64,000 bases of DNA from Rebecca billardiae RCC1528 (lineage: Eukaryota > Protista > Haptophyta): positions 248,001 to 312,000 of the forward strand of contig OZ251252.1 of assembly GCA_965240325.2 (NCBI GenBank), in the 5' to 3' direction. The translations under genes and the position numbers were made by a program. Below, piece by piece: positions 3,324 to 59,200 of this stretch. The notes below the pieces were generated by a model, which ran no database searches, was not told where the DNA came from, and was given only the letters and a program-made list of their open reading frames with translations. The number at the start of each line of letters is the position of its first letter. Position 1 is the first letter of the stretch.

Positions 3324-6300
3324 ATGGCGGCGCCCGCGCCCGAGCCCTCCGTGCCGACCTCGGCGCCCGGCCTCCCCGCCACCCCGCCCGCCCCCGCCGT
3401 CGCCTCCGCCGCCCGCGAGCGCGACGACGCGGACGCGGACGCAAAGCTCGAGCTCGCGATGCGCCGGCTGGACAAGATGCGGTTCGGGAGCGTGCGGCTG
3501 AGCGCGGCGGACGTTGACGACGAGCAGCTGGCGTTCCTCTGCGCCGCGCTCACCGAGCCCGAGCGCGCCGTCGTGCGCATCGACGTCGACCGCAACCCGG
3601 CCGTGTCGGATGAAGGCGCGGAGTCGCTGGCCGACGTGATCCGCGCGCGGCCGACGCTCACGTCGGTGTCGGCGCGCGAGTGCAGCGTGGGCGACGCCGG
3701 GCTGGAGGCGCTCGCCGCCGCGCTCGGCTCGAGCCCCGGCCTCACCGAGCTCTTCGTCTCGGGCAACGCCGGCACCGAGGCGGGCGCGCGCGCGCTCGGC
3801 GCCGCCGCCGCGCGCTCGCACCGGCTGCGCACGCTGCTCGTGGGCGAGCTCGAGCTGCCCGTGCAGAAGCTGCGCGCGAGCCCGGCGCGCGGGCCCGCGG
3901 CGCTCGACCTGAGCCGCACCCCCTTCTCCGCGCCCGCCGCCGACGGCGCGCGCGCGCGCGCGCGCGCGCTCGACCTCGTGGCGGTTACGGAAGTCGTTAC
4001 GGCGAACCGGCGGCTGGAGGTGCTGCTGCTGTCCGGCTGCGGGCTGTCCGGCGAGGGGGCGGCGGCGTGCGTGGCGCGCGTCGTGCGCGCGTGCCCGCTG
4101 CTCGTCGAGCTCGCCCTCGACCGCAACCCGTGGCGCGAGGGCCTTGAGAACATTCTCGCCGCGCTCTCGGAAGGCGCGCCCTCGCTCAGGAGATTGAATC
4201 TCGCGCACAGCCGCCCGCCGCTGGGCGCGCTCGAGGCGCTGAGCGACATGCTCGGCGCGGCGGCGGCGCGCGCGGGGGAGGGCGAGGAGGCGCACCCCGC
4301 CGCCGCCGCCGGCCCCGTGCCGCCGCTGCAGGAGCTCGTGCTTCCCGAGGTCCCCTTCCTGCCGCCCGCCGCCGGCGCGGCCGCGGTGCCACCGGCCGCG
4401 GCGGCGGCGGGCGGCGGAGGCTCGCCGGCGCGCGGCGGCCGCGTGGGCGGCGGCGGTGGTGGCGGCGGCGGCGGTGTGGGCGCGAACGGCGTCGGGGGCG
4501 TCGCGCCGGCCGACGAGGCGGAGGACGCGGGCGCGGGCTCGGCCGCGCTGCGCCGCGCCGTGCTCGAGACGCTCTCCCGAGCTGTCCTCGCCTCTCCGAC
4601 CCTCACCACCGTCTCCTTCGGCCGGACTCTGCTGCCGGTCCGGGAGTGGCGGCCGGACTCGCACGCGACGGTGAACCTGAGCGCGCGGCCGCTGCGCCCG
4701 GTGGAGGCGAGCCTGCTCGCGCTGCTCGCGGCGGGCGGCGGCGGCGCGTTCGCGCTTAGCGTGCGGTCCACCGGCCTGGGCGACGCGTCAGCCGCGGAGC
4801 TCGCGGGCGCGCTGCGCGCGCCGCACGTCGCGCTGCAGCGGCTCGACCTGGGAGATTGCAATCTGGGCCCGGCGGGCGTGGGCGCGGTCGCGGGGCTGCT
4901 GCTCGCGCACACGCCGGCGCTCGCGTCGCTCACGCTCGCGCACAACGTCCGCGCCGGCCTCCCCGCGTGCGTTCGATCGCTCGCCCGAGCGCTCGAGGCC
5001 AACTCCACACTGACGGAACTCGACCTGACCGGGACCGGAATTGCATGCACCGTGCCGCCCGGCGGCGGCGGTGGCGGGGGTGGCGCGGGTGGGCTGGGCG
5101 GCGCGCCGCTGATCATGCGCGCGCCGACGGGCCCGGGCGGCGCCGCGGCCGCGGCCGCGGCGCGCGGCGGCGCGAGCGGCGGCGGCGGCGGCGCCAAGGC
5201 CGCCGCGGCCGCCGCCGCCGCCTCGCTCGAGCCAATCACCGTCGAGCGCGCGCTCGAGTCGCGCGCGGCGCTGGAGGCGCTGGCGTCGGCGGTGGCGACG
5301 CACCCGGCGCTCACGTACCTCAGCCTCGGCTCCAACGCCCTCGGCGATCCCGGCGCCGCCGCGCTTTGCGGTCCGCTCGGCGCGGAGGGCGCTCACGGCC
5401 CGCTGGCGCACCTGGACCTGAGCCGGTGCTCGCTCGGCCGCGGCGCGGCGCGGCAGCTGCGCGCGCTCGTCGACCTGGCGCTCGGTGTGGTCTCGATCAA
5501 CCTGACGGGCAACCCTCTGATCCACGACGAATCCTATCGAATCGACGCGGCACTCGGCTCGCCGCGCCGCCGCAAGCTTGCACTCTCCGCGGCCGCGGCG
5601 AGCGGGAGTGCAGCCGTCGTGCTGGCGGCGGAGTCGCCGCGGCGGGCGGCGCCGCGGCCGAGCGCGCTGCAGCCGCAGCCGCCGCAGGCAGCGCAGCACG
5701 CGCAGCAGCAGGCTGCGCCGCCGCGCGCGCCGCCCGCGCCGCCCGCCGCGCGCGCGCCGGCACAGCCCGCTGACGCGCGCGCGGTCTCGGGCGCGCAGAC
5801 GCCGCCGCCTCGCGTCGACGTGGCGATTGCGCCCGGCACCGCCGCCGCCGCCGCCGCCGCCGCCGCCACGCCCGCGCGCGGCGCAGGCGCCGGCGGCGCC
5901 GACCCGGCGTCCGCGGGCGTGGACAACGCCTCCCCGACGCGCGGCGCGTCCGCCGGGCCGGTGAAGCCGATGCGGCGGCGGCCGGCGAACAAGCTGCCGC
6001 CGCCCGCGCCGCCGCCGCCGGCCGAGGCGCCGGCGGCCGCGGCGGCTGCGGCCGCGAGTGGTGGCGGCGGGGGTGGTGGCGGTGGCGCGGCGGCGGCGGT
6101 GGTGGTGGGCGCGGTCGGCGGCGCGGCGGCGCTCGGCGGCGCGGCGGCGGTCGGGTACGGTGCGGCGGCGGCATCTGCCGGGCCGCCGCCGCGGCAACCG
6201 GACGCGGCGGTGGCGAGCACGGCGGCGGTTCCGCCGCCGGGGGGGCAGCAGCAGCCGCCGCCGCAGCCGCTGGCACAGACGCAGTCGCAGGCGCAGGCAC

Positions 6301-56200: not shown

Positions 56201-59200
56201 GCCAGCATGGCTGCGAGCGGCGGCGGGCTTGGCCTGCTCGCGTCGCGACCTCCCTCCGCCATGGCCGCGTCGCCGCCGCCGCCGCCGGCCGGCGGCGGCG
56301 CGGGCGGCGCGCCGCCCGCGCCGGCGTCTGTGCTGTGCGACGGTTTCACCTCGGTCACCGACGCGGTGGGAGATCGAATCTCCGTCACGCACGGCGGCGG
56401 CGGTGTCGGCGGCGCCGCCGTCACCTACCGCGCGCGCGTGTGCGTGCTCCCGAGCTGCGAGCTCACGTCGCGTTGCCTGGACGCGCTTCAAGTATCGGCC
56501 GTGCCGCGCGCCGTGACCGCGGCGCTGCATGCCGAGCTGCTGCGCGCGCCGGACGCGGCCGCGGAGGGCGGCGATGGCGGCGGGGAGGAGCCGAGCGTCG
56601 CGCCGGGCGCGCAGTGGGGCGACGGCGGGCTGAGCTGGGCGCTGTGGTGTGCGCTGCTCCTGCAGGCGACGCCCGAGCCGCCGGAGCCGCCGCCGCCGCG
56701 GCCGGGCGCCGCCGCCGCCGCCGCAGGCGCTGGCGCTGCTGCTGCCGCCGCCGCCGCCGCGGCCGACGAGGGCTCTTCGGACTGGCAGTGGCTGCTCGAG
56801 TCGGAGCTGCATGCGCAGCTCGCGGACGACGCGAGCCTTGCGCCGCTCGCCGCGCTCGCGCGCACGCCGGGGCCGCCGCTGCCCGCCACCGCCGCGCAGC
56901 TGCGCGCGCGCGCGGCCGCCGCCGGCGGCGGCCGCGCGCGCGCGGCCACGCCAGCCGTCGACGCGCGCGGCCGGCCGTGGCCGGACGAGGCGGTGGTCGC
57001 GGCGGTGCGGCCGCACGCGCCGTCGATCCTGGTCGTGCTGCACGCGCTGTACGAGTCGTGCAAGCTCTCCGCGCTGCGCTCGCCGCAGCTCCGACCGTTG
57101 GGCAGGCTGTGCGCGCGGCTCGCGCACCGCCTGGGCGAAAGCCGTTACGTCGACGGTTACGCCCGCGACCTCTGCGACGAGTCGGAGGTGCTCGCGCTGC
57201 TGCGCGCGCCGATGCGCGCGGTCGGCGCCGGCGCCGGCGGCGCGGCCGAGCAGGAGCTGCCGCCGCCGTGCGACGTGCTCCGCTGGATTGGCGACGCGCT
57301 GACTGGCGGCGGCGCGCCGCTGCCGCCGTGCCCGCCGGCGCCGGCCTTCGCGGCGCGCGGCACCCGGCTCTGGGCGGTGACGCGGATCTACCGGCTGCTG
57401 CACGCGCGCATGCACGGCGAGCCGGCGGGCGGGGCGGCGGTGGCGCCGACGGCGGCGCGCGCCGGTGCGGCCGCGCCGCGCCCGCGCCCGCGCGCGGCGC
57501 CGCTGCGTGCTGACGCGGCGGCGCGGCGCGGCGCGGCGCCGGGCGGCGGCGGCGGCGGCGCGGGCGGCGGCGGCGCGGCCGACGGCTCCGGGCGGCGGCC
57601 GCTGCAGCTGCTGCTGCCGGCGAAGGCGATGCGCGCCGCCGCGCGCGCCGCCGCCGCCGCCGCCGCTGCCGCCACCGCCGCCGAGCCCGGCGGCGGCGGT
57701 GCCCCCGGCGGCGGCGCCGACGGCGACGCCAACAGCCACATGGAGTTGGACTCTGATTCCGCCGTTGCGGCGGCGGCGGCGGCGGCTGCGCCCGCGGGCG
57801 CCGACGGCGCGGCCGCCGGCGCGGCGGCGGCGGCGCCGGGCCTGTCGCTCGCCGAGGAGATGGTGGTGGCGATGGTGGAGGTGGGCATCGGCGCGCACGA
57901 GCTCGAGGACCTCCCGCTCGGCGTCGCCGCTCCGCTGTACGACGCATGCCGCACGGCGCGCCACCACGCGTCCGCGCATCTGCCCACTGCGGCATTCCTA
58001 TTAATCGGCCGCGACGATCTGGCGCTGCACGCGGCGGGCGGCGGCGGGGGCGGCGGGCCGGTGGCGGTGGGGCCGACGGGGCAGCTTGCGGCGCGCGCGC
58101 CGCCGCCGCTGGACGAGGCGGACGAGCTGGCCGCGCTCGCCGCCGGCGGCGCGGAGGGCGGCGGCGGCGGCGGCGGCGGCGGCGGCGGCGGCGGCGGCGG
58201 CGGCGGCGGCGGCGGCGGCGGCGGCGGCGCGACGGCGGCGGCCGCGGGCGTGAGCGCGGCGGCCGGCGCGCCTGGCGCGCCCACGGAGGACGTGGACGGG
58301 CTCGCGATGGTCGCCGCGCGCTCGCGGCTGCGCTTCTGCTCCGACCGGCGGCTCGTCGAGGTGAGGCGGCGGCGGGCGCGCGGGGCGCGCGGCGGCGGGC
58401 GCGCGGGCGCGCGGCGGCGGCGCGGGGCGCGCGGCACGCGCGGCGGCGGCGCGGCGCGCGCGCGGCGGCCGCTGCCGCGCTCGCAGCCGCGGCGGCGCGC
58501 GGTGGGTCGGGGCGCGCGGGTTGGTCGGGGCGGCGGCTGGAGCCGCCAGCCCGGGGTCGGGTGGCGCGCGCGCGCCAGCCAGCGCCGGGCGGGCCCATGC
58601 CCGCGCCGGCGGCCATGCTGCGTGCACCTGCGCGCGCGCTCACGCCGCGTTGCCGCGCGCCGCGCGCGCCCGCGCCCGCCGCGCCTCCGCGCGCGCCCGC
58701 GGCGCGCGCGCCCGCGGCGCGCGGCGCGCCAGGTGTCGTCGATGCTGCAGACGACGCGGCCGCTGCCGCTGAGCGCGCCCGCGGGCGGCGACGGCTCGGA
58801 CGTGCTCCCGCTTGCCGAGCAGCAGGCGCAACTCGCCCTGTTGGCGCGGCGCGCGCTCGCACTGCCTCTTGGCCGCGGGGCGTTTTCGCTCGGGTCGATG
58901 ACGCCGCTCGCGACGGAGTCGCTCGCGGTGCCGCCGCTGACGCTCACGGGCTCGATGGCGCCGAACCACGCGACCGTCACGCTCGAGGCGCCGCTCCCCG
59001 CCGACTCCGTCCTCTGGCCCGAGTTCCACAACGGCGTCGCCGCCGCCCTCCGCTACGAGCCGAGCGGCCTGCTTGCGCACGCCGGAGCGACGTGGCCAGC
59101 TCCTTCGGTGTCGGCCGCGGCGCCGCGCGGCGCGGCGCCCGGGGGTGGCGGCGCCGCGCGCTCGGGCACGGCGGCGGACGGCGGGGGCGGCGGCGGCGCG

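Follow-up and report, generated by a model that had tools for sequence, protein, structure and literature searches.

A short palindromic word recurs at two fixed spacings within nuclear genes of the haptophyte Rebecca billardiae and in haptophyte-like organisms

Why should one AT-rich palindrome recur in unrelated genes of DNA that is 75% G and C? The question is raised by a stretch of 64,000 nucleotides from Rebecca billardiae RCC1528 (NCBI GenBank assembly GCA_965240325.2, contig OZ251252.1, positions 248,001 to 312,000 of the forward strand), which is referred to here in its entirety as the window. The element in question, GAGAT-N3-ATCTC, consists of two fixed five-letter arms around a three-letter spacer. 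Exact copies in the window were counted and compared with dinucleotide shuffles, which give an expectation of 0.01. Nine are present, starting at positions 1987, 4190, 10053, 10074, 10549, 13299, 52205, 52234 and 56370, and GC content is 80-82% around the majority of them. An initial annotation, made from the letters alone, had reported eight of these sites and near copies at 4853, 8326 and 10095; all were recovered as described, and the ninth site at 1987 had been overlooked. N3-ATCTC follows nine of the 41 GAGAT words in the window, and 3 is the sole spacing present when spacings from 0 to 18 are scanned. Because the site at 13299 lies within a nearly identical block of ~50 nt, it is counted with 10549 as one origin. 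Merging this paralogous pair and the tandem copies leaves six independent loci, rather than the approximately five estimated originally, against ~0.3-0.4 expected at the genome-average density (P ~1e-6).

The genome comprises 72 Mb in 41 contigs, and contigs C2, C4, C6 and C9 are absent from every list of pattern matches, even for patterns at chance level, so that they may be masked or withheld. One protein of the genome has its nearest protein-atlas cluster commonest in Haptophyta, a weak sign of its lineage. Genome-wide, GAGAT-Nk-ATCTC occurs 39 times at k=2, 340 times at k=3, 716 times at k=4 and 186 times at k=5, with 201 further sites at k=6-8 in total (~67 per spacing), and reversed-pattern controls yield counts of 4-25. 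The k=5 count consists mostly of one unrelated repeat word, and only spacings 3 and 4 of the GAGAT/ATCTC arms are enriched. The initial annotation had singled out the three-letter spacing; k=3 does stand five- to eight-fold above neighbouring spacings, but k=4 is more enriched still. No inverted-repeat excess at spacing 3 or 4 was found for other arms.

Both spacings belong to a single family of words. At k=4, the word GAGATYGCRATCTC accounts for 426 of the 716 sites, and the family of the 14-mer GAGATTGCAATCTC numbers 433 genome sites at ≤1 mismatch. Extrapolating from the first 50 GAGATYGCRATCTC sites in the list suggests that roughly half of these, or ~220, are exact 14-mers. At k=3, GAGATTGCATCTC and its complement (the TGC/GCA class) occupy 94 sites and GAGATTGAATCTC and its complement (the TGA/TCA class) occupy 53, so the spacer does not vary freely as had been proposed; these two classes make up 43% of k=3 sites. 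Together they provide 147 canonical 13-mers in 72 Mb compared with none in reversed controls, and among the first 50 listed sites the remaining k=3 spacers are mostly one substitution from the TGC or TGA class. The family unit is [C]GAGAT-TG(C/A)-ATCTC[G]. From the spacer classes and their relation to the 14-mer, the sites in the window form the shorter, 13-bp class of this family, with GAGATTGCAATCTC as its 14-bp sister.

Family members occur at a density of approximately one site per 100-200 kb, which appears ~5-fold higher on small contigs than on large ones, the contig sizes being partly inferred. Sites are clustered regionally and within genes, and 13-mers and 14-mers co-occur in one gene (L017). 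Three other repeated words were observed in the genome. GAGATAAGCGCTTATCTC occurs in pairs exactly 2,229 bp apart (for example G000:C3:1811076/1813305, C3:2382705/2384934 and C7:780575/782804), and GAGATACACGATCTC and GAGATGCTCACGATCTC are repeated many times. These three words have the look of separate repeat families, possibly the ends of elements, with no relation to the 13/14-mer.

Placement relative to genes was evaluated in a locus sample consisting of the window, 20 loci of 10 kb and 15 loci of 3 kb elsewhere in the genome, with protein searches based on single uninterrupted open frames and no joining of spliced models. Codon-usage scores and open frames class about 40 of the 45 independent loci as coding. 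Since about half of the sampled bases already score as coding-like, this enrichment is moderate. The word is found in frames 0, 1 and 2 at 24, 7 and 9 loci, respectively (P=0.0015), and its two orientations are equally common. In frame 0 it reads E-I-A-S, E-M-Q-S, E-I-E-S or E-I-Q-S, usually followed by R, and its unusual A/T letters are placed at third codon positions. Third-position GC content in these genes is 0.90-0.94, and the codons ATT, GCA, TCT, CAA, AAT, TTG and AGA are rare. The rare-codon spelling GAGATTGCATCTC nevertheless occurs at 94 sites, whereas the four ways of writing E-I-A-S-R with GC-optimal codons have 15 combined; the peptide is therefore common owing to the word and not the reverse. 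The palindrome is a DNA-level feature, as the initial annotation had argued from its differing frames: it uses three frames, both orientations and rare A/T-ending codons. Elsewhere in the sample the word falls within an IQ motif or a dynein stalk, follows a subtilase domain or precedes ankyrin repeats.

Three comparable protein contexts reveal no added length at the word. In the pentafunctional AROM enzyme (L019), the word is read R-C-N-L and aligns without gaps opposite the T/S-L-P-I of five homologues, a strand motif of the dehydroquinase; judged from this alignment, the word seems to have replaced a conserved, proline-containing motif of this strand in an enzyme that is essential. The AROM stretch concerned is L019:4368-8495 (G000:C12). 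In the SAR1 GTPase (L035), E-I-E-S-R lies ungapped opposite the yeast E-L-R-S-A. In a leucine-rich repeat (LRR) gene of the window, G-D-C-N-L fills the x-x-C-x-L slot with the same spacing as the sister units S-R-C-S-L, S-G-C-G-L and G-S-N-A-L. Two other sites are associated with extra sequence: in a bestrophin (L010) the word opens a lineage-specific insert of ~39 residues, and a 21-bp array in the window lies within a loop 23 residues longer than in its paralogue. A direct insertion test on the window paralogues (9700-10200 versus 12440-12960) revealed only this 23-residue loop difference, the DNA being too diverged. A PDB search with a MOV10-like site (L006) returned no match, and no relative was close enough for comparison of orthologous sites, the best AROM match being 40% identical.

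The boundaries of the word were delimited by orienting 36 sites by spacer and comparing their flanks. Conservation beyond the 13-mer is confined to positions -1 (C, 64%) and +1 (G, 78%), and the full 15-mer palindrome is present at 15 of the 53 TGA-class sites. At 40 loci, flanking direct repeats indicative of target-site duplication and further palindromy outside the word were both at chance level. Central variants of the 14-mer are more often symmetric (TGCA, CGCG) than asymmetric (P=0.004), which hints at maintenance of symmetry. Two structural interpretations were rejected. As a hairpin, the 15-mer reaches only -2.3 to -3.6 kcal/mol, and its folding in context does not surpass that of shuffles. 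Against transposon termini, half-sites standing alone show mild enrichment at most: 6 copies of CGCAATCTC are present versus ~1 expected, mostly in coding words reading L-R-N-L or E-I-A-Q.

Environmental sequences were scanned for the pattern of two 13-mers 2-30 nt apart. Such tandem 13-mers are present in 37 metagenome contigs of marine and freshwater origin, ~30 of which have a GC content of 0.60-0.72. The arrays contain the identical word with differing spacers, have periods of 12, 15, 18, 21, 24 bp and more, and carry 13-mers without 14-mers nearby. The contigs examined encode eukaryotic proteins. For two of them the nearest named relatives are Prymnesium parvum (48% and 65%), Chrysochromulina and Calcidiscus, all prymnesiophyte haptophytes, and the S-adenosylmethionine decarboxylase of one such environmental organism is 39-49% identical to that of this genome. 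The word is present in other haptophyte-like organisms. Viral contigs contain no tandem 13-mers and no tandem 14-mers, and prokaryote genomes yield four matches to the tandem 13-mer pattern in 596 Gb. Tandem 13-mers also occur in four metagenome contigs of lower GC content (L061, L072, L036 and L067; GC 0.37-0.54). L061 has two 19-bp perfect palindromes, CCGGAGAT-GCA-ATCTCCGG, and L072 has head-to-tail 13-bp units; the copies in these low-GC contigs could, as with the four prokaryote matches, be coincidental and unrelated. In the literature searched, the words were met only in papers on other subjects, for example in lists of primers or constructs, and nothing was found on haptophyte nuclear palindromes; palindromes go unmentioned in the genome paper on Diacronema lutheri.

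Tandem copies are frequent in Rebecca as well. Thirty-seven of the 94 TGC-class sites (39%) lie ≤55 bp from an identical copy, and 13 of 21 inter-copy intervals are divisible by three (P=0.007). The initial annotation had suggested that the palindrome seeds local duplications. Its arrays are real, one of 21 bp in three units and one a 29-bp pair, but a causal role is not demonstrated because other short tandem repeats abound in the DNA around them. Variant units beside exact copies differ from them by 29 AT-to-GC changes versus 6 GC-to-AT changes (P=0.0005). This bias fits copies that arise exact and then erode under the GC bias of the genome, a direction that we infer from the asymmetry. Turnover is visible in six near-identical pairs of environmental contigs, in which arrays were compared: substitutions affect 11 of 501 word columns (2.2%) versus 128 of 12,846 flanking columns (1.0%; P=0.02), and whole units are gained and lost. 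Individual array copies are therefore under no visible purifying selection.

The individual sites of the window are as follows. GAGATTACATCTC at 1987..1999 lies in a reticulon-domain exon (coding score 20.5) and is read G-D-Y-I-S; its spacer, TAC, is off-consensus and a single step from TGC, so that it is either a variant family member or a chance site. The LRR gene carries two members. GAGATTGAATCTC at 4190..4202, of the TGA class, is read R-R-L-N-L with the rare codons AGA, TTG and AAT and provides the L-x-L core of the LRR consensus, and GAGATTGCAATCTG at 4852..4865, read G-D-C-N-L, is the 14-mer form with one terminal mismatch. The near copy CAGATTCAATCTC at 8326..8338 is found in a multi-C2/EF-hand gene at the onset of codon periodicity, and may mark an intron or untranslated region-to-exon boundary. 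Directly upstream of it, at 8273-8323, is an 11-bp tandem repeat (CGGCGCGATCT x 4.6) with no codon periodicity.

A 21-bp x 3 array occupies 10046..10109 on the forward strand, in a linker after a C2-type domain. It is in frame, reads G-A-E-M-Q-S-R and comprises two exact 13-mers (10053 and 10074) and an A-to-G variant (10095) at 90% identity. The paralogous pair is also on the forward strand: GAGATTGCATCTC at 10549..10561, read E-I-A-S-R, lies at the start of a C2-type repeat, and GAGATTGCATCTC at 13299..13311 has the same position in the duplicated repeat. Two copies with spacers TCA and then ACA form the 29-bp duplication (52205..52246, within a tandem pair spanning 52201-52255), where there is no clear coding signal. 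The last site, GAGATCGAATCTC at 56370..56382, is a T-to-C variant of the TGA class that is read G-D-R-I-S in an APC1-like gene. Two further features of the window were observed. The stretches at 10241-10437 and ~13000-13130 translate as P-N-P-N-P-D-P and L-T-L-T-L and are consistent with telomere-like CCCTAA tracts in likely introns of the C2-repeat gene. An inverted duplication (14501-17693 and 26920-30103) has arms of ~3.2 kb that are up to 97% complementary and enclose ~9.2 kb.

The reading we favour, with a probability of about 0.4, is that a conserved sequence-specific DNA process installs the word, as a molecular drive comparable to those proposed for bacterial words such as HIP1 (the highly iterated palindrome of cyanobacteria), uptake sequences and the products of very-short-patch repair. 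The recurrence of one fixed word in unrelated genes and distant lineages demands a sequence-specific agent that is itself conserved, and a drive fits because placement is length-neutral, a frame is preferred, native E-I/L-x-S sites are used, duplications are lacking and copies turn over without conservation. Such a process would install the word at the DNA level into pre-existing sequence. Copies would survive mainly where their A/T letters hit third codon positions (E-I-A-S-R, E-M-Q-S-R, E-I-E-S-R and E-I-Q-S-R) or in tolerant linkers, would multiply locally by tandem duplication and would then erode from AT to GC. The putative driver is a palindrome-recognising protein coupled to biased repair or gene conversion; it would convert near-matches and be counterbalanced by GC-ward decay, with neither mobile insertion nor per-copy selection involved.

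Several points weigh against such a drive. It is unusual for one dimeric protein to accept spacings of both 3 and 4. The AROM site would require changes at most of 12 coding positions, affecting 3-4 residues of a likely ancestral T-L-P-I; this is awkward for stepwise substitution and suits a copied patch better. Regional clustering, with six loci in five genes of the window, hints at local copying. The faster change of copies between strains was measured in tandem arrays only. The wider proposal that haptophytes share a conserved system which writes the 13/14-bp palindrome into nuclear genes, overriding an extreme GC codon bias and sometimes conserved residues, is put forward more tentatively and is best regarded as doubtful.

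The clustering and the AROM site are the main attractions of short-patch templated copying, an unlikely explanation that nevertheless deserves serious attention. A nascent strand would copy the word through a template switch or very short conversion tract and return in register, overwriting 13-15 nt at constant length, with selection purging harmful hits. The AROM site resembles such a block replacement of the conserved T/S-L-P-I, 13- and 14-mers occur in common genes (L017), and exact copies far exceed near copies, about half of the 433 14-mer sites being exact by the extrapolation given above. On the other hand, copies have only one flanking base in common, so no homology guides the patch, and a self-copying word that no protein constrains should drift between lineages, yet the same 13-mer is present in distantly related haptophyte-like organisms. 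The preference for frame 0 and for native E-I/L-x-S peptides suits substitution at pre-sites equally well. The identity of the word across distant lineages, its fixed arms in a 13-16 bp palindrome and the symmetric central variants of the 14-mer would also be expected of a selected binding site for a dimeric DNA-binding protein, such as a chromatin organiser, insulator or transcription factor, which was the main idea of the initial annotation. We consider this improbable. A modification target, also named in that annotation, is a further candidate. The sites are mostly coding rather than intergenic, which fits an insulator or transcription-factor role poorly; two spacings are in use, and the density is merely one site per ~100-200 kb. 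Moreover, low-complexity linkers harbour 39% of the TGC-class sites as tandem copies, and in the six contig pairs the word columns changed faster than their flanks (2.2% versus 1.0%) and varied in copy number, the opposite of purifying selection.

Extra sequence beside the word in bestrophin and in the window array would be explained if the word were a very small mobile element, a palindromic insert in frame or the footprint of transposon excision, and prefix-plus-suffix joins of the 14-mer would yield exactly the four common 13-mers. The annotation had likewise considered the footprint of a tiny mobile unit. This origin is very improbable: target-site duplication was not found at the 40 loci, there is no cargo and no common flank beyond a single base, enrichment of solo half-sites is not clear, inserting 13 nt would disrupt the reading frame, and AROM, SAR1 and the LRR units contain the word without added length. 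Those four common spacers are also the four single deletions of TGCA, and the TGC and TGA classes stand in a ratio (94:53) that agrees with the number of deletion positions (4:2), as if 13-mers were decayed 14-mers that had lost one central base. Such decay has, if anything, even less in its favour. Most 13-mers are exonic and in frame with both flanks, where a one-base deletion is a frameshift, and the two classes are one substitution apart; the 13-mer is therefore read as an independently installed length class. In addition, 147 13-mers against ~220 exact 14-mers (an extrapolated number) are far too many for indel decay, and the environmental 13-mer arrays have no nearby 14-mers. It is true that GAGAT and ATCTC are ordinary coding words and that long-read assemblies may hold motif-specific errors. 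It is hardly credible, however, that the word stems from chance, codon usage, a peptide motif or an error of sequencing or assembly, as shuffles and reversed controls give ~0, enrichment is confined to spacings 3 and 4, the rarest codons are used in preference to GC-optimal spellings and the same word is found in independent short-read metagenome assemblies. Some further candidates were dropped after inspection by eye only. The word was compared with a tRNA anticodon or T arm, with U1/U6 small nuclear RNA and with the stem of the SMRTbell adapter; GATC avoidance was also considered, as was a CGCG-centred precursor altered by CpG deamination, but for that last candidate the flanking CpGs are not decayed and the genome is CpG-rich.

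Over-represented palindromic words within genes are a long-standing puzzle in bacteria, exemplified by HIP1 and uptake sequences, and the literature searched describes no such in-gene word for a eukaryotic nucleus. Rickettsia palindromic elements, mitochondrial GC clusters and double-hairpin elements are inserts of 30-150 bp that add length. They resemble the haptophyte word in being palindromic repeats tolerated in protein-coding genes, often in loops, but the haptophyte word has 13-16 bp, adds no length in three contexts and is not accompanied by target duplication. Quasipalindrome correction by template switching generates perfect short inverted repeats with no net length change and could keep the arms of the haptophyte word symmetric. 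It perfects any local near-palindrome, however, which leaves one fixed word across genes and lineages unexplained, and no general palindrome excess is seen. The uptake signal sequences and DNA uptake sequences (USS/DUS) of bacteria, and the bias of very-short-patch (VSP) repair for CCWGG, are cases in which words accumulate in genes by sequence-specific bias. They share with the haptophyte word preferences for reading frame and peptide and, on the favoured reading, a molecular drive in place of per-copy selection. The USS/DUS and VSP drives depend on natural transformation or on Vsr/Dcm, and we know of no equivalent drive process for the haptophyte nucleus.

HIP1 (GCGATCGC) is the highly iterated palindrome of cyanobacteria (PMC5861425, PMC4390886). 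Like the haptophyte word, it is a short exact palindrome that is far over-represented, lies within open reading frames in several frames without altering their length, is common to a phylum-level lineage and has no accepted mechanism. HIP1 is an 8-bp bacterial word with approximately one copy per gene, whereas the haptophyte word is eukaryotic and nuclear, has 13-16 bp in two length classes and amounts to a few hundred sites in 72 Mb, or approximately one per 100-200 kb. HIP1 has been tied to orphan methyltransferases, and its sites are conserved between genomes (PMC5861425), while copies of the haptophyte word, as measured in tandem arrays only, change faster than their flanks. The frequent occurrence in tandem arrays is a further difference from HIP1. 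The haptophyte word prevails over a third-position bias of 92-94% GC. If a specific protein or repair bias is responsible, it would constitute a tractable molecular drive that shapes eukaryotic coding sequence, and the word could serve as a lineage marker for haptophyte DNA in metagenomes. A system that writes the word would be the first eukaryotic nuclear counterpart of the bacterial HIP1 and uptake-sequence drives, with a putative nuclease, repair factor or conversion-biasing binder as its recogniser.

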